DNA of 63,981 nucleotides, counting the filler, from Guillardia theta CCMP2712 (taxonomy: Eukaryota > Protista > Cryptophyta), in NCBI RefSeq assembly GCF_000315625.1. It is 9 parts of 9 records of this genome, joined end to end, with 100 filler letters (N's around TTAATTAATTAA, not from the genome) between each part and the next. Parts side by side here need not be neighbours in the genome. Positions count along the whole stretch, not along the records: positions 23,737 to 35,808 come from NW_005434334.1; 8 more parts are not named here. One strand, 5' to 3'. Below are positions 4,913 to 35,808 of the stretch, in pieces; position 1 is the first letter of the stretch, and every line of letters starts with the position of its first letter. The notes beneath the pieces are model-generated. The model did no database searches, was not told the origin of the DNA, and saw only the letters and a program-made list of their open reading frames with translations. The translations under genes were made by a program, and so were the position numbers.

Positions 4913-7900
4913 ATGAGCTCAAAGCTGCTTGCGCTCGTTATGCAGCCATCTCGGCTCACGTTCCTGCAGCGCAAGTCCAAGCTCTGCCTTGAGAGCAGCG
5001 ATGACAAGGTGCACTTCTTTGTCTTCCGATGGCATCAGGTCAAACACACGGATGGGCTTCGGCAGATAGATGAGGTTGAGGACAGAGAGTTGAGAGCCTT
5101 CGATGAACAGGTGTTTGCGGACGAGCTTCATAAAGAACTGCATGCGAGGATGAAACCAGAGCTGTCATGGTTGTTCAAGATCTATGCGCATAAGATTTAC
5201 CTGGACGTCAACTGCATCTCCTATCTGTCAGTCAACCACCAGGCGTTCAGCAAAGAGAGGTACCTGGGGTACTGCACGATGTTCGTGCCGGTGATAACCT
5301 GGGGTAAAGTGACAAGCGTGCTTGGCATACTGGAAGGAGTGCAGGAGGGGTCTGACAGGGAGTGCGAATTCCTACAGCTTGTACTTGCGATGATCTACCT
5401 GCTCGAGAAGAATGCCGGTCGATTGAGACTAGTCATGCCGATCCTTCGAGACGAGGGAGGAGGATTTGTACCTCTGGAGGAGGCCGTAGGGAGGCTGAGT
5501 AGCGCAGGATCAAGTTTGAACAGCCAGAAGGCGTGCTTGCTCTTGCTAGGGGCGGGAGTGCAGGAAGACAAGGACAAGATGCTGGCTTATCTGAGCGGCG
5601 TGTCGGTGCGAGATGCTGTGATGAAGCTTCTGTCGAACTCAAGCAGGAGGATACTGGGACTTGGAAGTGAACCTGCAGCAGTGCGAGGAGCATGCGGGGT
5701 GTACCTGGTAGCAAAGGGTCTAGACGAGAGGAGGAGTGCAGAGGGAGCTGGTGCTGTAATAACTGAGCACCTGGTTGATGAGCTGAGGGAGCAGGTAGCC
5801 GAACGGCTTTTGCATTATGAGAAGCACAACCCGCGGGGGTCAGAGATGACGCAGGTGTTGAAGCAGACTGGGACGTTCGAGCTCCTGCACGAGTTCTTTG
5901 CGCTTCGGGGCATCGACTCGCTAGACCGACTGACTGCGGTGAACACGATGAAGTCGATGAGGGGTGCGAGGACGTTGGATGACAGCGAGGAGTTGTGCGA
6001 AGAGATCAATAGAGCAAAGGAAACGTTTTACGACCAAGCGGTGGAAGCGATAGGAAGCATGGTAAACAAGTGCAGCAAGGATCAACGTTTCTTGCCGTTG
6101 GACACGAGGCTGGATGTATACAGAGACAACGAAGTTGACGGGATCCTGGCCCTGAGATCAAGTAATGCGCTGGAGACGGCGCTGCTGAAGACGCCAGCTC
6201 AATGCTGTGTTGCCTTCTTGGGCTGCCTTCAATATGCGTTCCAGGGTGTGATGATACGGAGAATGATAGAACGGAATTCTATCTGGTTGTTAGACCCTCA
6301 TGCACAGCTTCCAGTAGAGCCGAGGACAGTGCAGGTGTCTCGACTTGTCGATGCCTGCCTGGGCTTTGTGTGGGGATCCATGTACATGGCAGGGCTCTTG
6401 ATGTGCAAATACAATACGCCATTGAACGCGAAGCGTGTGTTTATAGGAGCAGCACATCTCATGCTTTGGCTGAAGATCATCTCGTCTATATCAGATTTCA
6501 TCCAGTGCGGACCCAGGGAATACGAATCTACAAGTTGCAGCGGGTTCTCTTCGTTTGTTATAATCGCCAGCATAGTGTTCGTTCTTTACTTTGTGCACTT
6601 CAAGCAGCACTACATCTGGATAGTCGCCTTCCTCTTCCAGGGAGCCTACTGCATCAGAGATGGGTTCATAACCCCCGAGGAATCAAAGATCATGTTTGTG
6701 GTTCTCGGGATTATCTGCCTCTTGATTGATGTTATGATTGTTGTCAAGTACCGGATCTGTTACTACCAGACTTTCAAAGATCTCAGTGTGGCCATGGAAG
6801 GCTTCGAGAAGACTTGGAGCCGGATCGTGGCCACCTGCACTGATAAGATAGATGATATCAGCAACAACGTGCAGACAATCTCACAGGAGCTAAAGATATG
6901 GACTCGAAGGCAAGGATGCTTGTTGGCGATGATGAAGGGACGAACTTCGCGGTACTCGAGTAGTTGCGGGAAGATTCGGCAGCAGAACAAAAGCATCGAG
7001 ACGTTGTTCGAGCATGCGCAGGAAGTCAGCGCCGCGTTCCAGATGTGGGTGGGGCAGTGGAACCCTGTGGGTGAAGTTGTGCATGGCAAAGTTAAGTCTT
7101 GCGAGCGAGCGATTCAGAAGACTGTGAGGTCGTACCACCGGGACGCGTCATGCTTGACCGACCTTGTGCGATGTACAGTGGTGGTGAAGACTGTGGAAGA
7201 GGTGCTGGTGTGGGTGAAGGGGTTGCGGTCAATGTCCGTGGTAGCTAAGGGACTGAGTGGATCCATAAATGAAGAGATCAAAATGTTGTCCATAGGCGAG
7301 GTAGGGGAGGGAGGCGAGGCGAGGTCTTTATCGCTGACGTGCACTTCAGGAGACGTATTTGAACATCACAAGCATCAAGAACAGGTAAGAGGAAGAGGGA
7401 AGGGAATCTACTGCGGTGAAGGAGCCAGAGCGTCAACATGGCAAGGGTAGGGAGGCTGATACTCTACGGGCAGATATGATTGGAGATGCAATCTAAAGGC
7501 TTGCGGCGGGTACCGGGACCTTTGTGTGTGTGTCGAGGTAAGACCGAGGAAGAGGCGGGTTTGAAGCAGCCAAACAGAGGAGAAATGTCAGAGGAGTGTG
7601 AAATGCTTTACAGGTGGGATGGACAGTGAACGCAACGAACAAGGAATGCACCTTTGTGCCGCTGAAGCAATGGGATACGACACCGAACCTTCGACGCCAT
7701 ATTTGTGAGATTCAGGTAGAGGACAATGAGAGGATGAGAGAGGAGACCTTTTTTCAAGGGGAGGAGAAGGGCACGATAGAAGAGAGGAGGAGAGGAAAGA
7801 TGGAGACTGATTGATAGAGGAAGAGAGGGGAGAAGGATTGTGGAGGGGAGACGAAGGCCGATATTGAACAAAAGGGACTGCAGGTGCTGTTGGAGGATCT

Positions 7901-13160: not shown

Positions 13161-13718
13161 ATGACTGCGAGCAAGCGAGGAGATGTGCTAAGCGAGAAAG
13201 TCGCCAGACTCCGAGAAAGGCTGCAGACTTGGAACGAGCCAGTGCGACATGAGAGGCTGCTGTCTGTGCAGGAGTCAGGAAGAGTGTTCTCCTCACAGGG
13301 AGCAAGGATTTCAGAGCTTCTCTGGCAAGCCAAGACTCTAGACAAGAAGGTGGTGGATCGGATCATTGTGAAGCAGCTCGCCTATCATCTCGCCAATGAT
13401 ATCACAGACCAACAACCGACAGACACCACGTCGCGAACTGATCGAGGACGATTATCGCAGACAGCCATGCGACTGCGAGTGAGACTTGGAGCAGAAGAAT
13501 TTCATCAGAGGATGAAAGATAATTCTCATTGCACCACATATGACTTTATAGACTTCATCTCGAAAGAGATGTCCTCCAACCGTCAAATCCTGGGTGGTTC
13601 ACCCATGTATCAGAGCAAATCACTTGGTATTGCTGATGCGACGAGCGAGTCAGCTCTGCGGCATCAAATCGAGGAATCGAGGAGATTACGCACAAGAAGC
13701 GAGCGAGTTTTAAAGTAG
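13161..13718 (+). CDS. Hypothetical protein (185 aa)
   Basis: ATG-initiated ORF of normal composition, convergent with RAD21. Confidence 0.5.
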   Translation: MTASKRGDVLSEKVARLRERLQTWNEPVRHERLLSVQESGRVFSSQGARISELLWQAKTLDKKVVDRIIVKQLAYHLANDITDQQPTDTTSRTDRGRLSQTAMRLRVRLGAEEFHQRMKDNSHCTTYDFIDFISKEMSSNRQILGGSPMYQSKSLGIADATSESALRHQIEESRRLRTRSERVLK

Positions 13719-23736: not shown

Positions 23737-26700
23737 ACCCATAGGACATTTCTCCCAGGGGGAAGAAAACCTCCCTTGACCCCCCTGTGTTCTCGACGGA
23801 TCCTGCCGGCCGGGCCCGTCAGTAGACCGACTGCAGCCTTCAGCCCCGCCTCAGACCCCCTGGAGGCCCGCCAGGAGGCTAAGTGTCCGGAGATTGGCCG
23901 GGGGCCCGATCTCTCCGGGCGGCCGTGACCGGTCAGCGGACCGTGTCAGCAGGCCCGTGACATGTCAGCCGGCTGACAGGGTCCGTGACCCGGCTGACAG
24001 GCTCACCTGACCGGTCACGTGACACATCACGTGACCGAGACAAGACTTTTTTATATCGCAGATCCAAAAACCCATAGGACATTTCTCGCAGGGGGAAGAA
24101 AACCTCCCTTGACCCCCCTGTTTCTCGACGGATCCTGCCGGCCGGGCCCGTCAGTAGACCGACTGCAGCCTTCAGCCCCGCCTCAGACCCCCTGGAGGCC
24201 CGCCAGGAGGCTAAGTGTCCGGAGATTGGCCGGGGGCCCGATCTCTCCGGGCGGCCGTGACCGGTCAGCGGACCGTGTCAGCAGGCCCGTGACATGTCAG
24301 CCGGCTGACAGGGGCCGTGACCCGGCTGACAGGCTCACCTGACCGGTCACGTGACACATCACGTGACCGAGACAAGACTTTTTTATATCGCAGATCCAAA
24401 AACCCATAGGACATTTCTCCCAGGGGGAAGAAAACCTCCCTTGACCCCCCTGTTTCTCGACGGATCCTGCCGGCCGGGCCCGTCAGTAGACCGACTGCAG
24501 CCTTCAGCCCCGCCTCAGACCCCCTGGAGGCCCGCCAGGAGGCTAAGTGTCCGGAGATTGGCCGGGGGCCCGATCTCTCCGGGCGGCCGTGACCGGTCAG
24601 CGGACCGTGTCAGCAGGCCCGTGACATGTCAGCCGGCTGACAGGGGCCGTGACCCGGCTGACAGGCTCACCTGACCGGTCACGTGACACATCACGTGACC
24701 GAGACAAGACTTTTTTATATCGCAGATCCAAAAACCCATAGGACATTTCTCCCAGGGGGAAGAAAACCTCCCTTGACCCCCCTGTTTCTCTACGGATCCT
24801 GCCGGCCGGGCCCGTCAGTAGACCGACTGTAGCCTTCAGCCCCGCCTCAGACCCCCTGGAGGCCCGCCAGGAGGCTAAAGTGTCCGAGATTGGCCGGGGG
24901 CCCGATCTCTCCGGGCGGCCGTGACCGGTCAGCGGACCGTGTCAGCAGGCCCGTGACATGTCAGCCGGCTGACAGGGGCCGTGACCCGGCTGACAGGCTC
25001 ACCTGACCGGTCACGTGACACATCACGTGACCGAGACAAGACTTTTTTATATCGCAGATCCAAAAACCCATAGGACATTTCTCCCAGGGGGAAGAAAACC
25101 TCCCTTGACCCCCCTGTTTCTCGACGGATCCTGCCGGCCGGGCCCGTCAGTAGACCGACTGCAGCCTTCAGCCCCGCCTCAGACCCCCTGGAGGCCCGCC
25201 AGGAGGCTAAGTGTCCGGAGATTGGCCGGGGGCCCGATCTCTCCGGGCGGCCGTGACCGGTCAGCGGACCGTGTCAGCAGGCCCGTGACATGTCAGCCGG
25301 CTGACAGGGGGCCGTGACCCGGCTGACAGGCTCACCTGACCGGTCACGTGACACATCACGTGACCGAGACAAGACTTTTTTATATCGCAGATCCAAAAAC
25401 CCATAGGACATTTCTCCCAGGGGGAAGAAAACCTCCCTTGACCCCCCTGTTTCTCGACGGATCCTGCCGGCCGGGCCCGTCAGTAGACCGACTGCAGCCT
25501 TCAGCCCCGCCTCAGACCCCCTGGAGGCCCGTCAGGAGGCTAAGTGTCCGGAGATTGGCCGGGGGCCCGATCTCTCCGGGCGGCCGTGACCGGTCAGCGG
25601 ACCGTGTCAGCAGGCCCGTGACATGTCAGCCGGCTGACAGGGGCCGTGACCCGGCTGACAGGCTCACCTGACCGGTCACGTGACACATCACGTGACCGAG
25701 ACAAGACTTTTTTATATCGCAGATCCAAAAACCCATAGGACATTTCTCCCAGGGGGAAGAAAACCTCCCTTGACCCCCCTGTTTCTCGACGGATCCTGCC
25801 GGCCGGGCCCGTCAGTAGACCGACTGCAGCCTTCAGCCCCGCCTCAGACCCCCTGGAGGCCCGTCAGGAGGCTAAGTGTCCGGAGATTGGCCGGGGGCCC
25901 GATCTCTCCGGGCGGCCGTGACCGGTCAGCGGACCGTGTCAGCAGGCCCGTGACATGTCAGCCGGCTGACAGGGGCCGTGACCCGGCTGACAGGCTCACC
26001 TGACCGGTCACGTGACACATCACGTGACCGAGACAAGACTTTTTTATATCGCAGATCCAAAAACCCATAGGACATTTCTCCCAGGGGAAGAAAACCTCCC
26101 TTGACCCCCCTGTTTCTCGACGGATCCTGCCGGCCGGGCCCGTCAGTAGACCGACTGCAGCCTTCAGCCCCGCCTCAGACCCCCTGGAAGGCCCGCCAGG
26201 AGGCTAAGTGTCCGGAGATTGGCCGGGGGCCCGATCTCTCCGGGCGGCCGTGACCGGTCAGCGGACCGTGTCAGCAGGCCCGTGACATGTCAGCCGGCTG
26301 ACAGGGGCCGTGACCCGGCTGACAGGATCACCTGACCGTTCACGTGACACATCACGTGACCGAGACAAGACTTTTTTAGATCGCAGAGCCAAAGACCCAT
26401 AGGACATTTCTCCCAGGGGGAAGAAAACCTCCCTGGACCCCCCTGTTTCTCGACGGATCCTGCCGGCCGGGCCCGTCAGTAGACCGACTGCAGCCTTCAG
26501 CGCCGCCTCAGACCCCTTGGAGGCCCGCCAGGAGGCTAAGTGTCCGGAGATTGGCCGGGGGCCTGATCTCTCCGGGCGGCCGTGACCGGTCAGCGGACCG
26601 TGTCAGCAGGCCCGTGACATGTCAGCCGGCTGACAGGGGCCGTGACCCGGCTGACAGGCTCACCTGACTGGTCACGTGACACATCACGTGACCGAGACAA

Positions 26701-27891
26701 GACTTTTTTATATCGCAGATCCAAAAACCCATAGGACATTTCTCCCAGGGGGAAGAAAACCTCCCTTGACCCCCTGTTTCTCGACGGATCCTGCCGGCCG
26801 GGCCCGTCAGTAGACAGACTGCAGCCTCAGCCCCGCCTCAGACCCCCTGGAGGCCCGCCAGGAGGCTAAGTGTCCGGAGATTGGCCGGGGGCCCGATCTC
26901 TCCGGGCGGCCGTGACCGGTCAGCGGACCGTGTCAGCAGGCCCGTGACATGTCAGCCGGCTGACAGGGGCCGTGACCCGGCTGACAGGCTCACCTGACCG
27001 GTCACGTGACACATCACGTGACCGAGACAAGACTTTTTTATATCGCAGATCCAAAAACCCATGGGACATTTCTCCCAGGGGGAAGAAAACCTCCCTTGAC
27101 CCCCCTGTTTCTCGACGGATCCTGCCGGCCGGGCCCGTCAGTAGACCGACTGCAGCCTTCAGCCCCGCCTCAGACCCCCTGGAGGCCCGCCAGGAGGCTA
27201 AGTGTCCGGAGATTGGCCGGGGCCCGATCTCTCCGGGCGGCCGTGACCGGTCAGCGGACCGTGTCAGCAGGCCCGTGACATGTCAGCCGGCTGACAGGGG
27301 CCGTGACCCGGGCTGACAGGCTCACTGACCGGTCACGTGACACATCACGTGACCGAGACAAGACTTTTTTATATCGCAGATCCAAAAACCCATAGGACAT
27401 TTCTCGCAGGGGGAAGAAAACCTCCCTTGACCCCCCTGTTTCTCGACGGATCCTGCCGGCCGGGCCCGTCAGTAGACCGACTGCAGCCTTCAGCCCCGCC
27501 TCAGACCCCCTGGAGGCCCGCCAGGAGGCTAAGTGTCCGGAGATTGGCCGGGGGCCCGATCTCTCCGGGCGGCCGTGACCGGTCAGCGGACCGTGTCAGC
27601 AGGCCCGTGACATGTCAGCCGGCTGACAGGGGCCGTGACCCGGCTGACAGGCTCACCTGACCGGTCACGTGACACATCACGTGACCGAGACAAGACTTTT
27701 TTATATCGCAGATCCAAAAACCCATAGGACATTTCTCCCAGGGGGAAGAAAACCTCCCTTGACCCCCCTGTTTCTCGACGGATCCTGCCGGCCGGGCCCG
27801 TCAGTAGACCGACTGCAGCCTTCAGCCCCGCCTCAGACCCCCTGGAGGCCCGCCAGGAGGCTAAGTGTCCGGAGATTGGCCGGGGGCCCGA
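23737..27891. repeat. 332-bp satellite, left array (~12.5 units)
   Basis: Unit spacing 24019, 24351, ... is 332 bp; near-identical copies; runs into a gap on the left. Confidence 0.97.
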
Positions 27892-28109
27892 CATAGCGTT
27901 GACATTTTGCTTTTTGTTCTTTAGGGTACATGGTTTACCGGCGGGGGTTGTTCCTTTGGTGTAGGCGTGTAGGGGGTGGCGTGGAGACCTGTTTCAAACG
28001 ATTTCAAACTGGTTTCGAAATTAAAGTTTATAAGTCGATTCTTGTTTCGGCCAAAACTATTTTAGTTTGTACTTGGGGATTGTTGAGTATAATCTGGGCA
28101 GCGACAGCC

Positions 28110-29285
28110 ATGGCGGACCGCTCGGAGCATCGAGCATCAACAAGAAATGCAGCGCAATTGGGTGTGGCGAAAAGAAGGAAGATGGAAGCGAATGAAAATG
28201 ATGCAATTGAAGATGAAATATCATCACCCCGAGATTTTCTAGACCAGCTTAGAACTCCTTTGTTCTTTTCGTCGAATGCTTTCGTCCTGAATGAACCAGA
28301 GCATACCAACAAGTGTGCACGTTACCGGCTGAGCAGCCTGGATATTGATTTTGTACTTGAGCCTACGCTTGGAGTTGTATTTCAAGATTTGCATGGTAAA
28401 ACTAGGCATGGAATCATTCGGAAGTCTTCAGAGCATTCGGTATCTGTCTACATTTTGTACACCAAGGAAATGTTACAAGAAGTCGGCCAGAATGTGCGAT
28501 TCAATGCACAAACATCAAGGATGATAGGATCTTTGGAGAAATTTGAGTGTTTCCAAAGTTTGTACACAGACGAGTTCCCTTTGAAAGATATCATCGGTGT
28601 TTTTAGAGTGAATTTTCAACAAGTCTCGATGAGAGGTTCAGCAGCCTCCGTAAGTTTGGGAAGTTCGTCGTTGCCACAATGTCTTCTTTGTGTTGGCTAC
28701 ATATACTTTGATATAAACTCTAGGAATGGTCATGAAGAATGTCATTTATCCTTCTTTGGCAAGCTCAATGTCACTTTCGACATGCTAAAAATCTTCTTCC
28801 TGAATGTCAGAAGTCAAGTAGACCCTTTTCAGCTTGCACGAGATATACACAAGCTGAGGACAGAATTGGAACGGTGGTTCAAGACACGTGGAGAACCATT
28901 TCTAAAACCTCATATCAAACGTGTTGAAGTGGACGTCGAGCACGACGAAGTCACCTCATTGCTCTTGATTCTGAAGGCCGCACTGCTGGCAATACCTGAC
29001 AGCGATTATTCAGGACTTACATGCTCAGGCTTGAAAAAAGGCGAGTGTTGTTGGACGGTGTGTGAATCAATCCTCAAGCACCCTTTCATTCAAGAACAGT
29101 TTCCTGTGCCATTCAAAGAAAATCCGTACCAGTTGGAGCCAGGATCTGGTTCGCTATACCTTGAAGGCCCTGTGCAGATCTGCTTGAAGAGAAACAGCCG
29201 TTTCAAAACTGTTCGTCTTTGCATCAAATTCAGTCGACTCGTAAGACTTTGCATGTTTGGAAGTGAAAGTTGGAAGATTCCATGA
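28110..29285 (+). CDS. Transposon accessory protein (391 aa) with BAH-like domain and NLS-like KRRK
   Basis: Intronless ORF (longer ATG start at 27930 possible). RHGIIRK...VSVYILYTKE...ECFQSLYTDEFPLKDIIGVFRV...LCVGYIYFD resembles the BAH consensus ELFxSxxxDxIxxxxIxGKCxV. Confidence 0.65.
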   Translation: MADRSEHRASTRNAAQLGVAKRRKMEANENDAIEDEISSPRDFLDQLRTPLFFSSNAFVLNEPEHTNKCARYRLSSLDIDFVLEPTLGVVFQDLHGKTRHGIIRKSSEHSVSVYILYTKEMLQEVGQNVRFNAQTSRMIGSLEKFECFQSLYTDEFPLKDIIGVFRVNFQQVSMRGSAASVSLGSSSLPQCLLCVGYIYFDINSRNGHEECHLSFFGKLNVTFDMLKIFFLNVRSQVDPFQLARDIHKLRTELERWFKTRGEPFLKPHIKRVEVDVEHDEVTSLLLILKAALLAIPDSDYSGLTCSGLKKGECCWTVCESILKHPFIQEQFPVPFKENPYQLEPGSGSLYLEGPVQICLKRNSRFKTVRLCIKFSRLVRLCMFGSESWKIP

Positions 29286-29431
29286 CGAGGAATAATTTGG
29301 AGGGGATCTCATATGTTGTTCAAGCATGAGGCAGCAGAAAATCGTACCAGGGTGCCTCGCAGACATTTGACTCGCATTTATTCGGATGAATAAAACACTA
29401 CAAAATTCAGTCTGACGTGTACAAGTCATGG

Positions 29432-31908
29432 TCATACGTGGCTTTGCAACAAGAGCTGACCCAGTGTAAAATGTGCTCTGCAACACTTATGGAACTTTCC
29501 CTTCTGGTCTTGCTTGAACGATGGGCCGTTTGCGCTGTTACATGGGCAGCGAAAATCGTTGGAATCTGACCCAGATGCAGATCCTTCATCCGAAGGTACC
29601 AACTTTTTTTTTGATTTTGCGATGTAGTTGTTGGCCAAAATCAATGCTCGCTGATAGGATGGACGGCCCTGCAACCTATGACGAAGCTCGATGCAAGACA
29701 TGTTGAGCAGTCCAATTTCAACTCCATATTTCTCGTAGAGATATGTGAACTGGTCTCCTACATGTCCAGACACCATTGAATGCAAGTAGAACGACTGAAG
29801 AAGTTTTGCTTGTCCAACCAAACGAATCAACTTGTACGCAAAGCTTCTAATCTGTATGGGCAAATTCTTCGCTTGATCCTGACTCATCTTCGCAAAGTGC
29901 TGCGTCTGTAATAGAAAAAGAATATCTCGTAGCTGCTCAATTGCCTCATCCCACATTTTCAATTTCTCTTCGTCTTGACATATGATTCGAATAACTTCAG
30001 GCAATACCCGAATCAAATCATTGCATTGATCGCCATCTAGCTGTGTTCGAAATTCTTGTAACCTTTTTTCACTTAATTGAATGTGTACGCCATTCATTTC
30101 AAATACCTGGTTGATGTGTGACAGCTTCCTCTTGTTATCAGCCACAGAATGAATAAATTTGATAATCGTATTGCAAATTCGCATCTTCAAGTGTAATGAG
30201 CAGTAGATAAAATCCATCGCGGTCAACTTCAAGGGTCGCAGTTCTTCATATTGCCTGCAGATCGGGATGTATCTTTGAACTGCTATTTTTGTCCCTGTAG
30301 GAATTAAATCATCTGGAAACGCCATGCAGTTGTCAATGACTTGCCGATTGTGATCTGTTTTGAGCTGGTCATATTCTGCCTTACTGCAGGAATCGAAGAG
30401 TTCATGAAATCCTGGACCTTCTCTGACCAATAGATTCAAGTCGCGCATGTCCTTAGGAAGAACTTGGTACTCGTTGCAAATACCGTGCCAGGTAAACCTT
30501 TCTTCAGCTGAGACAGTGTGAACAGCAAAAAACTTCGCAGATTTCTTGCTATGAAGCTTCTCGTTGCAGTGGATGCAAAATTCACCATCGCTATCGTGCG
30601 GTCCACCTCGCTGCAGATAAGCGTAATGTCCCGCCAAGTCTGCTCGAAAAAGAAATTCAATGCCTATCTTGTTTGAAGCATTGCCGCCGGCTTTTGACTT
30701 GTCCGCTCCGTACATAGCCTTCCCGTCGTGAATATGCACCCCTTCTGTCTGCAAATCTTGGATCTCCTCAGTGTAATAATGCCAAAAGTTTCTCTCTAAA
30801 TTTCACCGCTGTCCCTGTCGGGAATAATCATCAAAGTCACAAGCCTTGGTGCAAATCGCATCCTGGTTTCATGCACACTGATCCATTCGGCAGAATTCTG
30901 CTTGGTATGGTACGGCAAAATACTGATGGTAATCTCGGTATGTTTTTTGTCACTGCTTGAGCATTTTGTCAATTTTGTACAATCGCTGTTGACGGTTACA
31001 ATCAACTTGTCATACTTTCCAAGGTTCAATCGGTCTATCACTTTTTCAATAGTCCTTCGCAGCGAAGCACCGTGTGCTCCTTCCTCCGTGCAAAACACCT
31101 CCAATTCTTCATGCAGATTGTTTGTCATTGTGACGCGTGTTCGACAAATCTTCCGTACGGGAGTCGCAACGTGATTGCTAGTCCTGGGAGATAATTTCAT
31201 GATTGCCACATATTTCTTCAAAGCTACATTCGAAACTGTCAAACCAATGCTGCCCTCAACTTCATCTGCCAAGAAGAGCTTTGTAATGTACCTCAATGCA
31301 TACTGCAAGTCTTCGTCCGACCGGAGCTCTTTTCTCAAGAATTCTTTGATTCGAGGGTTCTTCATTGTTCCTATGACAAACTTTGCCAAGGGACTCTTGG
31401 GCTGCTTTCTCCGCCTGGGCTTGGAACCTAAATTTGAGCCAGAAGCTACCACCGTGACTGGCGGATTGCAGCGGTTTGTTCCATGATCGTGAGAGGTTGG
31501 CCCTTCATGCTCACTTGCATGTGAAGGTGAATGACTTCCACAGGTTTCAATGATCGGCATTTCTTCTGAACCACCGTGGGCCTCGATGCCTACATTTGAA
31601 TGACACTGCGAAGTACGAGGGGGCCCACTCTCACAAGGAGCTAAAGTCGAATGATTGCAAGGAATAACTGTTGCCTGAGAAGAAGCCATCATGCCAAAAT
31701 CCTGAGCAGGTAATTCCACAGTCATCTCTTCATGTCCATCGTCATCAACCATGTCATGATCATCCATATCCGAGTGACTGGCAGGATCAAATTCAGGAAA
31801 CAGATATGGAAAGTGTTCCAACTTCTTATCATCCCCGCTCTTTTCTATCCCAAAGGCTTGGCCAATCAGAGAAACAAAGAGTTGTACTGTCCTAACCATG
31901 GCTCGCAA
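29432..31908 (-). CDS. RAG1/Transib-like DDE transposase core, split by a 1-nt frameshift at ~30798; further 5' exons probably up to ~33500
   Basis: Ordered motifs IVTVNSD, FRADL...FCIHC, YCSLHLKMRI and FYLHSMVSGHV...IGLLNMSCIE parallel the RAG1 core KESCD, GYDEK...ICTLC, IDALHCDIG and YFHKTLAHV...IGAWASEGNE. Confidence 0.78.
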
Positions 31909-34162
31909 ACAGCGAGTGTGCAGAACAGATGTTCACCGAACATACTCAGAGGAAATTCCTGATGTGTAGAGGTGATGAGCCTGGAGGAGTGCTTCGTACA
32001 GGTCGTGAATCTCACGAAAAATCATTTGGTAAGCGAAGAGCATCAACAATACAAGTGAAAACCACCATCACGAGGATACATTGCAATCGAAACCGAGGCG
32101 TAAAATACCCTAAGCTAACTGCGATGCATGACAGGGAAACTGAGCTGGAGTAGATGGATGGAGGTTACACTGAAGACAACAGGGAATTATCATCAGATGG
32201 TGACTGGATTGTTCAAAAGCTGTACGGTCACCTGTGAGCTCAAGAACACATGTATGTCTGATAGGTTCGCAAGCAATACAGTGCATTTTAACCGTGAGCA
32301 GCTCGACAATGATGATCAAGCAAGTCCCGTGGTCCTGATCGGGATTATTCATCCAAGTTTTCAGAGATGTGTTAGAACAATGAAACATTTTGCAAATCAC
32401 CAAGGCCTGTGTCATTTCATCACATGATGCATCATGTAAATGTTTCTGGTGTGACTCGCATCAGAATGTGTTCACCAACGAGTTGCTGCCAAGCAGACGA
32501 TGTCAGAGCAAACATGAGCACTTTGGAAGATGCTGATATTCCAGGCCGTAGAGCATTTATGATGTGGCCACATGTCACATGCTTCTTGATTAACACAGAT
32601 GCACATCCGACAGGCAAAAGATGGAACGTCGCAAGGATTACAGGGAGGTCGGTTGTACTTGTACCCTGATTGTAACTCTTCTAATAAAGATGTGTTAACC
32701 TGGATGTGCAATTCTGTTTATTGATTCACAGCGTTTGCATGTGTAGCGTTTGCGATTCATTTACAATCGTCGAGTGCTTGCTCTGTATAACAAGGAAATC
32801 CACTGTAAAGCCATGCGACAAGAAGTCTACAGTTGCACAGTAGCATCATGCATTGTGAACTGACAAAACCAGACAGGATTGATTCGAAGAACATCTCATT
32901 TATTGATACGCACAAAGGCATCATCTGCACATTGTTTCATTTCTGACTAGGTTTCTGTGCCATCGAAAGCGTTGTGGAAATATCATGACAGATGAAAAAT
33001 TTGAAGAGCAGAAAACTCATCTAACGTCCTGAAACATGGAAATGCAGCTATCAATGCACTTGATCATGGATATAGTTATTCATGATCAACAGCAGATCTC
33101 TACAGTCATCTATGCGGGCAGGAAAAGTCATCCTCTGTGCAAACATATCTTCACGGTGAACGGTTGAGTGCATGTAACACTTGCCTCCACAATGATAGAA
33201 AAGTAAAGTGCATGAATCCTGACCGTAACACTAGAGGAATTGAAAGTGAGTGATGACATGAGGAAACATTTCCAAACAGAAAAGTCACATAAAGAACAGC
33301 TGGATCCAAAATTCTTACAAACCATGCATTTGAGCGCAACGTGCAACCCACGGCAATTTGAATGGAGGGTCGATCAGAGTTGCTTCTGCTCAATGGTGTA
33401 TGAATTGTTAGTGCCTTACCTGATCATAAAGATTTCATCTTGTCTTCGAAGCATATTTGCAAGTACATCCGCGGATTGCTTAAACCAAGGGCACATATTC
33501 CATTACTGCATGGATGATTCAAATATTGGCCCAACCTGCAGAGTTGAGAAAGAAGCTCGATCATCTCTTACAGGGATGATATGAGATCTTCATCTCATTC
33601 CTATCTCAGTTGGGTTGGATTCGAAGTCTCTCAATGTCAAGGTTCATCCTCGCGAGTCAGGAAGGCACCATTTCATCGCTTCTTGCTCGTCCAGGGAGAG
33701 AGGGCTTGGGGAATGAGAAAAGGGGGCTACCCCCCACCCCCTATTTCAGAGTTTCAAACTCTTTCAAAGGTGGGTAGTTGAGGGTGCTCCATGTCCACCC
33801 CACCCCCCAACCATAGTCAAACGGAGGGGTTCTCAGAGGTCGAGGTTCCGACCAGTTTGGCCCTCGTTTTGTACCATGTAAATGCTTCAATTTTAAGATG
33901 GTACCACATATACTTCTAAAATTCGTACTTTTACATTGGTTTGGCGTGGTGAGGTGTCCAAGCAACCCAAATTCAAATCACCCCACCCCTCATTTGCCCT
34001 GCGCAGCGACCATTTTTCTGAGAGCTAGTACCCTCCCCCAGCCCTGCTCCAAGGGGGGTACTATCTGATGGCATGGGATGGAGGCACCCCTCAGGTCCTT
34101 CGAAAAAAAAAAAATATTGCCAATTTTTCCTATGAGCGCCCGGCCGGAAAAGCAACGCTATA

Positions 34163-35808
34163 TCTCTCCGGGCGGCCGTGACCGGTCAGCGGACCGTGTC
34201 AGCAGGCCCGTGACATGTCAGCCGGCTGACAGGGGCCGTGACCCGGCTGACAGGCTCACCTGACCGGTCACGTGACACATCACGTGACCGAGACAAGACT
34301 TTTTTATATCGCAGATCCAAAAACCCATAGGACATTTCTCGCAGGGGGAAGAAAACCTCCCTTGACCCCCCTGTTTCTCGACGGATCCTGCCGGCCGGGC
34401 CCGTCAGTAGACCGACTGCAGCCTTCAGCCCCGCCTCAGACCCCCTGGAGGCCCGCCAGGAGGCTAAGTGTCCGGAGATTGGCCGGGGGCCCGATCTCTC
34501 CGGGCGGCCGTGACCGGTCAGCGGACCGTGTCAGCAGGCCCGTGACATGTCAGCCGGCTGACAGGGGCCGTGACCCGGCTGACAGGCTCACCTGACCGGT
34601 CACGTGACACATCACGTGACCGAGACAAGACTTTTTTATATCGCAGATCCAAAAACCCATAGGACATTTCTCGCAGGGGGAAGAAAACCTCCCTTGACCC
34701 CCCTGTTTCTCGACGGATCCTGCCGGCCGGGCCCGTCAGTAGACCGACTGCAGCCTTCAGCCCCGCCTCAGACCCCCTGGAGGCCCGCCAGGAGGCTAAG
34801 TGTCCGGAGATTGGCCGGGGGCCCGATCTCTCCGGGCGGCCGTGACCGGTCAGCGGACCGTGTCAGCAGGCCCGTGACATGTCAGCCGGCTGACAGGGGC
34901 CGTGACCCGGCTGACAGGCTCACCTGACCGGTCACGTGACACATCACGTGACCGAGACAAGACTTTTTTATATCGCAGATCCAAAAACCCATAGGACATT
35001 TCTCCCAGGGGGAAGAAAACCTCCCTTGACCCCCCTGTTTCTCGACGGATCCTGCCGGCCGGGCCCGTCAGTAGACCGACTGCAGCCTTCAGCCCCGCCT
35101 CAGACCCCCTGGAGGCCCGCCAGGAGGCTAAGTGTCCGGAGATTGGCCGGGGGCCCGATCTCTCCGGGCGGCCGTGACCGGTCAGCGGACCGTGTCAGCA
35201 GGCCCGTGACATGTCAGCCGGCTGACAGGGGCCGTGACCCGGCTGACAGGCTCACCTGACCGGTCACGTGACACATCACGTGACCGAGACAAGACTTTTT
35301 TATATCGCAGATCCAAAAACCCATAGGACATTTCTCGCAGGGGGAAGAAAAACCTCCCTTGACCCCCCTTTTCTCGACGGATCCTGCCGGCCGCGGGTCC
35401 GTCAGTAGACCGACTGCAGCCTTCCCCCGCCTCAGACCCCCTGGAGGCCCGCCAGGAGGCTAAGTGTCCGGAGATTGTGGCCGGGGGCCCGATCTCTCCG
35501 GGCGGCCGTGACCGGTCAGCGGACCGTGTCAGCAGGCCCGTGACATGTCAGCCGGCTGACAGGGGCCGTGACCCGGCTGACAGGCTCACCTGACCGGTCA
35601 CGTGACACATCACGTGACCGAGACAAGACTTTTTTATATCGCAGATCCAAAAACCCATAGGACATTTCTCCCAGGGGGAAGAAAACCTCCCTTGACCCCC
35701 CTGTTTCTCGACGGATCCTGCCGGCCGGGCCGGTCAGTAGACCGACTGCAGCCTTCAGCCCCGCCTCAGACCCCCTGGAGGCCCGCCAGGAGGCTAAGTG
35801 TCCGGAGA
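34163..35808. repeat. 332-bp satellite, right array (~5 units)
   Basis: Same unit resumes exactly where the left array was interrupted; runs into a gap. Confidence 0.97.

Follow-up and report, generated by a model that had tools for sequence, protein, structure and literature searches.

The locus described here raises the question of whether the association of a RAG1-type transposase with a chromatin-reading partner is a recurrent solution or a one-off. For the origin of V(D)J recombination it is a central problem, still open, how RAG1 acquired its chromatin-reading partnership, and so far every two-gene RAG-type transposon has had a RAG2-like partner of the kelch/PHD kind. The locus belongs to a stretch of 63,981 nucleotides of Guillardia theta CCMP2712 DNA, which will be called the window, and consists of a transposon copy of 6270 bp (27892-34161) that interrupts a satellite array. 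An earlier note on this DNA had described the insert as a RAG1/Transib-like transposon in which the transposase gene lies tail-to-tail with a gene for a BAH-like protein.

The evidence assembled in the present work favours the reading that this copy belongs to a two-gene cut-and-paste family which combines a RAG1-fold DDE transposase with a BAH-like accessory partner analogous to RAG2, and this reading is, on balance, a fairly likely one. In the Guillardia family the same fold would then be paired with an unrelated reader-type domain. If this is true, the transposase-reader pairing is a recurrent solution, met again, with the genes likewise convergent, in a remote branch of eukaryotes.

A two-gene element in a satellite array

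Positions 23737-35808, as resolved by Tandem Repeats Finder (TRF), form a tandem array of a 332-bp unit whose copies are 98% identical, with a single interruption of 6.27 kb. The left part of the array (23737-27891, no strand assigned) comprises 12.5 units (TRF period 332, 98% matches) and ends in a unit that is cut after ...GGGGGCCCGA, and the right part (34163-35808, likewise without strand) resumes in phase with the left, as found with TRF and by comparison of the units. The insert has a GC content of about 44%, compared with about 63% for the satellite. Fourteen satellite units without an insert show the empty site, GGGGGCCCGATCTCTCC; in the interrupted one CCCGA is followed by CATAGCGTTG ... 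CAACGCTAT and this by ATCTCTCC, so that the satellite phase is kept across the insert with exactly one added base. The earlier description of a 6.27-kb insert bounded by terminal inverted repeats within a satellite is confirmed by this exact interruption and by inverted ends of 9-10 bp. The same end points bound a second copy on G. theta scaffold JH992995 (L001 6196-13475), which is 98% identical (97-98.5%) and has exactly the same end bases.

Two convergent genes occupy the element. The open reading frames (ORFs) of the window copy extend over 27930-29285 on the plus strand and over 29432-30754 and 30796-31908 on the minus strand, and the facing stop codons, previously estimated to be about 150 bp apart, are separated by 146 bp. 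Two convergent genes are also seen in the related elements L001, L003, L005, L018 and L019, and in complete elements, which are 4.6-7.3 kb long, both genes are intronless. The L001 copy contains an uninterrupted, intronless transposase ORF of 972 amino acids (aa) and the same partner ORF of 451 codons.

In the window element the partner gene is intact but the copy is defective, since its transposase gene has suffered both a 5' deletion and a frameshift: 1007 bp of the intact copy (L001 8488-9494) are missing at the junction 31883-31884, which removes the start codon and approximately 159 codons, and an A run at 30798-30802 on the minus strand is one base short, reading GAAAT here and GAAAAT in intact copies. 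Contigs of runs X1, X8 and X15 diverge from the window at 31883, and the contigs of three runs have an extra T behind 30800; the undamaged form is thus represented in three sequencing runs.

The transposase

The family transposases are 740-970 aa long and are found mainly in the cryptophyte algae G. theta and Hanusia phi. The minus-strand protein of the window is 96% identical to a G. theta CCMP2712 protein and 36-60% identical to proteins of the H. phi transcriptome, and an exhaustive hidden Markov model (HMM) search of 1.84 billion representatives recovered only 47 proteins, from G. theta, H. phi, Cymbomonas tetramitiformis and metagenomes.

The assignment of the protein to a fold was made by structure prediction. 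An AlphaFold2 (AF2) model of residues 329-972, computed from a 42-sequence alignment, has a predicted local distance difference test score (pLDDT) of 88.9 and a predicted template modelling score (pTM) of 0.87. RAG1, amphioxus RAGL and HzTransib account for all of the best 49 Foldseek matches of this model in the PDB (E from 7e-9), and the next is Hermes (E 0.017), a ranking that cannot separate RAG1/Transib from CACTA elements because no CACTA-type structure has been solved. The same ranking was obtained in a Foldseek-independent search of 48,161 chains, and the structure comparison scores of other transposases were 11 for the P element, 9 for ISCth4 and 7 for Hermes. The predicted RAG1/Transib-like fold spans the whole transposase core, including the RNase H-like DDE domain, the helical domain inserted in it and the zinc site. 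A language-model search found neighbours that are mostly RAG1 families, among them RAG1_RNase_H, ZnC2 and ZnH2 clusters; the language-model atlas returned nothing usable for the N-terminal transposase ORF. It can safely be stated that the family, as modelled, would be a deep lineage in the fold group that comprises RAG1/Transib and the CACTA-Mirage-Chapaev (CMC) elements, and it is very likely that the element is a transposon with a RAG1-type fold.

The motifs that the earlier note had listed in RAG1-core order (NSD, RAD, CIE, CxxC, HxxxxxH and LH) are present and near-invariant in the 18-29 family members over which residue conservation was counted, and are numbered here according to the 972-aa L001 transposase. 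The gene that carries them in the window is broken, by the frameshift near 30800 and the deletion at 31883, which is a correction to the earlier note. The part upstream of the frameshift, which is truncated at its 5' end (30796-31883, minus strand), contains D456 of the NSD motif (30982-30984), which is conserved in 25/26 members. The downstream part (29432-30800, minus strand), for which the fold match to RAG1/Transib was obtained, contains D571 of the RAD motif (30638-30640; 28/28), C592 and C595 of the CxxC motif (30566-30577; all members), the near-invariant C717-x-x-H720 (30191-30202), H857 and H863 of the HxxxxxH motif (29762-29782; 21/22 and 19/22, respectively) and E888 of the CIE motif (29687-29689; 17/18). 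To judge from their sequence positions, the two aspartates, the glutamate and the zinc ligands resemble those of RAG1 in order and spacing; the RAG1 counterparts are presumably D600, D708, C727, C730, H937, H942 and E962. In the model D456 is located within a strand, D571 just past one, and E888 within a helix, which is the placement expected for an RNase H-like DDE fold. All 27 of 27 members also have a fourth acidic residue, D513 (codon 30811-30813), in a PDKD motif that follows the third strand.

The transposase is under purifying selection. The ratio of non-synonymous to synonymous substitution rates (dN/dS) is 0.14 between two window-type copies and 0.28 between L003 and L019.

The partner gene

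The plus-strand gene (28110-29285) is intact in the window, where its frame is open from 27930. It probably starts at the ATG at 28110, which gives a protein of 391 aa, because the transcript contigs begin at about 28101-28105. In the family as a whole the partner protein has a length of about 390-440 aa. The BAH-like domain, at model residues 61-219, is encoded at 28290-28766 on the plus strand, and is followed by a C-terminal half (28830-29282, plus strand) that is conserved in the family and for which no known fold was found.

Sequence methods and structural methods gave different kinds of result for this protein. Word-indexed protein searches, with the partner either alone or in profile form, brought up nothing except its own near-identical copy, a blank attributable to the method, given that homologues were later found in fetched loci; the language-model atlas gave no usable match, and comparison of the Pfam BAH model with seven partner sequences gave no match at E 1. 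The AF2 model of the 391-aa form, built from 7 sequences, has a pLDDT of 60, which rises to 74-84 over most of residues 80-160. With this model of medium confidence, the best 50 Foldseek matches are all BAH domains, and in a shape search of the atlas 9/10 rows carry Pfam BAH. The N-terminal domain, which has structural matches to BAH only, would accordingly have the BAH beta-barrel fold. RAG2, with its kelch propeller and PHD finger, is not among the structural matches, and the proposal that the partner is BAH-like and not of the kelch/PHD type is upheld at the confidence of this model. Aromatic and acidic residues that are invariant by sequence position in the family's BAH-like domain are Y117, Y152, F200 and D93 (391-aa numbering).

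The loci around diverged transposase relatives were fetched in order to look for partner genes. Every cryptophyte-type lineage examined has a gene of 386-460 codons tail-to-tail with the transposase gene, at a distance of 16-150 bp. Whether both ORFs co-occur in other copies was a question put by the earlier note, and they do: the partner is present tail-to-tail, as homologues of 22-33% identity, in 6/6 diverged lineages, and lies inside the element ends where these are known (window, L003 and L005 types). The window partner is 30% identical to that of L005 (E 8e-54) and 23% identical to that of L004 (E 3e-17), and the partner HMM detects the genes of L012 (E 4e-71) and L011 (E 7e-33). Across the six lineages the transposase identities and the partner identities, taken pair by pair, vary together (Mantel r 0.88, permutation p 0.01), which indicates that the two genes have been inherited together. 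More distant transposase relatives (E approximately 1e-5 to 1e-4) occur in the prasinophyte green alga Cymbomonas tetramitiformis (L009 7001-9796) and in a metagenome (L010 2098-5634). Some of the C. tetramitiformis relatives are annotated as LysM domain-containing.

The partner, too, is under purifying selection. Between L003 and L019, which are 95% identical at the nucleotide level, 42 synonymous and 75 non-synonymous changes yield a dN/dS of 0.46, with p 2e-4 against neutrality. Taken with its distribution and its predicted fold, the partner is in good probability a conserved BAH-like component of the element.

Both genes are expressed. In run X8 the partner gene is covered by a contig at 28101-29371 with a depth of 11.7, and the transposase gene by one that extends from 29364 to 31883 and onward with a depth of 58.7; separate contigs of unequal depth fit two convergent transcripts that overlap by a few bases. 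In run X22 raw RNA reads cover 29060-29459 on the plus strand and 29260-29659 on the minus strand, in each case at the 3' end of the gene on that strand, and where the copies differ these reads agree with the intact one. Related transposase proteins are also contained in the H. phi transcriptome.

Ends, target duplication and mobility

Comparison of ends places the left terminal inverted repeat, CATAGCGTTG, at 27892-27901 (plus strand) and the right one, CAACGCTAT plus base 34162, at 34153-34162 (minus strand). These are the ends of the window type, which is 6.27 kb long here and 7.28 kb in L001. Comparison of independent copies defines the ends of the L003 type (4.6 kb) as CATATTGGTC on the left and GACCGGTATG on the right, and those of the L005 type (4.65 kb) as CATATTGGGA and GCCCGGTATG; the left end of the L011 type is likewise CATAGCGTTG. 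The family end signature is taken to be CATA...TATG because the ends of these four types agree. A comparison of the 19-base left end with metagenomes gave three chance matches that had nothing else in common with the element.

Insertion duplicates 1 bp of the target. The element of the L005 type sits within a Ty3/gypsy pol gene that encodes an integrase with a chromodomain (the flanking gene parts are L005 2314-2947 and 7599-10319), and removal of the element plus 1 bp restores an ORF of 1117 codons, which reads ...ASGLTPFEIIYGRE... and has the conserved integrase motif GLTPFEIIYG. One shared base is found in the flanking pairs, which are a/a for L005, t/t for L003, g/g for L001 and g/g for L019. 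Two observations speak against a uniform 1-bp duplication: the flank pair g/c of L018 misfits it (its contig comes from a metagenome and, like L005-L007, may be a chimera), and the single added base in the window fits it only if the terminal G has been lost or changed. Base 34162, A in the window and G in L001, represents the target duplication of 1 bp or else a terminal G that has mutated; on the latter alternative the window insertion made no duplication and its terminal G was changed to A. The insert adds one base only under either reading, which excludes the 5-bp duplication of Transib and RAG elements and also the 2-4 bp of the CACTA, Mirage and Chapaev groups.

Two other interpretations of the insertion sites were abandoned. 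A 3-bp duplication (GGG) at the L001 copy was dropped, as that locus has undergone rearrangement and has a 35-bp piece of satellite for its right flank, and a Helitron reading, with the insert placed between the A and T of GATC, was rejected in view of the inverted ends, the DDE transposase and the absence of Rep/helicase.

The family has been mobile, as is evident from the exact interruption of the satellite, the copy with the same ends elsewhere, a third left flank, and independent copies in two sister lineages. The third flank occurs in run X15, where a DNA-type contig has a different sequence to the left of window position 27889 (...GCCGCGCAGCG then CGA then CATAGCG); with it the window-type element has three insertion sites.

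The intact L001 copy itself lies within another element, a relative of the L011 type with an internal deletion (L001 3877-6311 and 13476-13644). In this copy an 84-bp stretch (6228-6311), which is 100% identical to 13516-13599, replaces window positions 34040-34126, and the 35-bp satellite fragment (6160-6194) adjoins the right end. These rearrangements suggest repair or conversion events, or the carry-over of flanking DNA.

Upstream of the transposase gene, the window element has a lineage-specific region of 2.3 kb (31884-34152, no strand assigned) without a long ORF, which is absent from the 4.6-kb elements of the L003 and L005 types and is 83% similar to L001 4433-5900. Raw RNA reads on both strands fall at 32460-33860 within this region, together with loose read ends and short contig pieces (for example 32526-32597 inside a 1272-nt contig) which may represent exons, or else fragments that host transcripts have in common with the element.

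Arrays of the 332-bp satellite are also located about 3 kb from copies of the L004-type element (L004 10417-13187; L016 and L017; G. theta scaffolds JH993271, JH993240 and JH993353), with a protein kinase gene between the element and the array. The L004, L016 and L017 loci have flanks in common, and look like segmental duplicates or alternative scaffolds. The 107-codon ORFs with GTG starts that recur in the window satellite at 24019-27660 and 34272-35259 are a by-product of the 332-bp period, with its internal 21-bp sub-repeats, and not genes.

Proposed mechanism and alternative explanations

By analogy with RAG1 and HzTransib, the transposase would bind the element ends and introduce nicks at the terminal CA, and the element would be released by way of hairpins formed on the flanking DNA. 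Insertion would then take place with a 1-nt stagger, consistent with the observed 1-bp duplication. The partner may serve as an accessory subunit or regulator analogous to RAG2, and its BAH fold and the parallel with RAG2 suggest that it could couple transposition to nucleosomes or to chromatin state, for example by directing or licensing insertion in repeat-rich heterochromatin. The more specific proposition that the partner is a chromatin-guiding subunit has a little less than an even chance of being correct. A still wider proposition, which is put forward tentatively, is that the family is a new superfamily-level lineage with the RAG1 fold, in which the logic of RAG1-RAG2 either evolved independently or was kept from an ancient ancestor, the BAH reader steers or licenses integration in heterochromatic repeats, and the 1-nt stagger is unlike that of any described eukaryotic cut-and-paste superfamily. 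The targets that can be resolved are all repeats, namely the satellite in the window, another element of the family in L001 and the gypsy element in L005. Such insertions agree with repeat targeting, and may agree equally well with the survival of harmless insertions.

Several results weigh against a RAG1-type transposase that is guided by a reader. The transposase matches nothing in Pfam even at E 10, and the family profiles, when searched against all PDB sequences, find neither RAG1 nor Transib; sequence searches of Pfam and the PDB with all individual ORFs likewise gave no relevant match. In the predicted-structure atlas, clusters of Transposase_21 (CACTA-type) have template modelling (TM) scores of 0.54-0.58, against 0.55 for the RAG1_RNase_H cluster, and four unannotated clusters are nearer than any of these. 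Beside the distant transposase relatives of L009 (Cymbomonas) and L010 (one metagenome contig) no partner homologue was detected. The partner dN/dS between the two window-type copies is 0.64, which with 13 changes is indistinguishable from neutral, and survival instead of targeting may explain the repeat location of the insertions.

The atlas scores are the natural starting point for the view that the family is a deep branch of CACTA-Mirage-Chapaev and not kin of Transib/RAG1, and that the partner is a counterpart of TnpA/ORF2 which binds subterminal DNA and joins the ends and does not read chromatin. This view is unlikely to be correct: no Pfam Transposase_21 match appears at E 10, Transposase_21 is first met at rank 47 among language-model neighbours that are mostly RAG1 families, and the spacing of CxxC and HxxxxxH is that of the RAG1 zinc site, even though a solved CACTA structure for direct comparison does not exist. 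The CATA...TATG ends recall CACTA...TAGTG and the duplication is short in both cases, but it is 1 bp here and not 2-4. The requirement of CACTA elements, which make 3-bp duplications, for their ORF2 protein (PMC4158355) would provide a precedent for a second gene, yet the structural matches of the Guillardia partner are to BAH only. In the classification of Kapitonov and Koonin, Chapaev is grouped with Transib as a distant clade (PMC4411706), which makes the groups relatives in any case.

Another possibility is that the partner is needed without guiding integration, as a regulator that, for example, counters host silencing or limits the transposase, and that might not bind the transposase at all. 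The conservation, co-inheritance and purifying selection of the partner are as well accounted for in this way, and BAH domains occur in silencing and DNA-methylation proteins, which are among the structural matches. A complex prediction for the transposase core and the partner gave an ipSAE interface score of 0.00, without support for an interface, but as alignments were not used and the partner was poorly folded this speaks neither for nor against binding. The convergent two-gene layout, however, parallels that of RAG1L-RAG2L, in which the partner is a subunit, and the regulator explanation is considered rather doubtful. That the plus-strand ORF is a passenger without a role, either a captured fragment of a host gene or a chance ORF, is highly improbable and has been largely refuted. 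The near-identical copy found alone by word-indexed searches, the low language-model recognition and the dN/dS of 0.64 between the two nearest copies would fit a passenger, but homologues of 424-460 codons recur, identically placed and oriented, in six lineages among which transposase identity is no more than 19-58%, and the ORF lies inside the element ends, is transcribed, and has a dN/dS of 0.46 (p 2e-4) in the comparison of the L003 and L019 copies.

For the favoured reading, in which a RAG1-fold transposase is joined by a BAH-like accessory partner, the existence of an intact, expressed, intronless element (L001, 7.3 kb, with sister elements of 4.6 kb) makes the pairing question experimentally testable. 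Among eukaryotic DNA transposons the family forms an additional group, with a target duplication of 1 bp, which is unusual, and a compact transposase whose targeting is guided by chromatin might be obtained from it.

Comparison with known systems

The literature search found no description of this family, and no previously described family with the same two-gene layout, a find that would have counted against the earlier note. In the full text of the papers covered, with Repbase outside the scope, nothing combines Transib with Guillardia, the phrase "BAH domain" is absent from the RAG/Transib papers listed, and no BAH-domain gene encoded by a DNA transposon is described.

The family shares with Transib (HzTransib) and the RAG1 core the order and spacing of D-D-E, the CxxC and H(x)nH motifs at the RAG1 ZnC2/ZnH2 positions, and CA...TG ends. 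It differs from Transib in that its ends are CATAGCG or CATATTG in place of CACWRTG, with which they agree at 5/7 positions, the third base being T and not C in the four lineages with known ends; in its 1-bp duplication, compared with 5 bp in Transib; in having a second gene, which classical Transib elements do not have; and in its hosts, which are cryptophyte algae. The family is not Transib in the strict sense, because of the 1-bp duplication, the CATA...TATG ends and the lack of detectable similarity at the sequence level. The earlier assignment to RAG1/Transib holds for the fold, by virtue of the best 49 Foldseek matches, and has to be given up for Transib proper.

The duplications of CACTA, Mirage and Chapaev elements are 2-4 bp long. 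CACTA/En-Spm, Mirage and Chapaev elements have in common with the Guillardia family a comparable predicted shape, short duplications and ends that begin with CA, and in CACTA elements a second protein is needed for transposition. The Guillardia family differs from them in having no sequence match to Transposase_21 (PF02992), no CACTA pentamer and a duplication of 1 bp, and its second protein is BAH-like and not TnpA-like. From the BAH domains of ORC1, Sir3, DNMT1/MET1, BAHCC1 and EBS/SHL the partner differs in having no sequence match to Pfam BAH (PF01426).

Two-gene RAG-like transposons are known from animals and from the alga Aureococcus, and in each case the partner is RAG2-like and the duplication 5 bp long (PMC9435367, PMC4411706). 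Like ProtoRAG, TransibSU and AanRAGL, the Guillardia family has two genes, one for a transposase with the predicted RAG1 fold and one for a partner with a domain of the chromatin-reader type. AanRAGL (Aureococcus) likewise comes from a unicellular alga, but its genes are in tandem and not convergent. The Guillardia family differs from these elements in its ends and in the length of its duplication, and in a partner that has a BAH-like domain and a further C-terminal half in place of a kelch propeller and PHD finger; with ProtoRAG it shares convergent, tail-to-tail genes.

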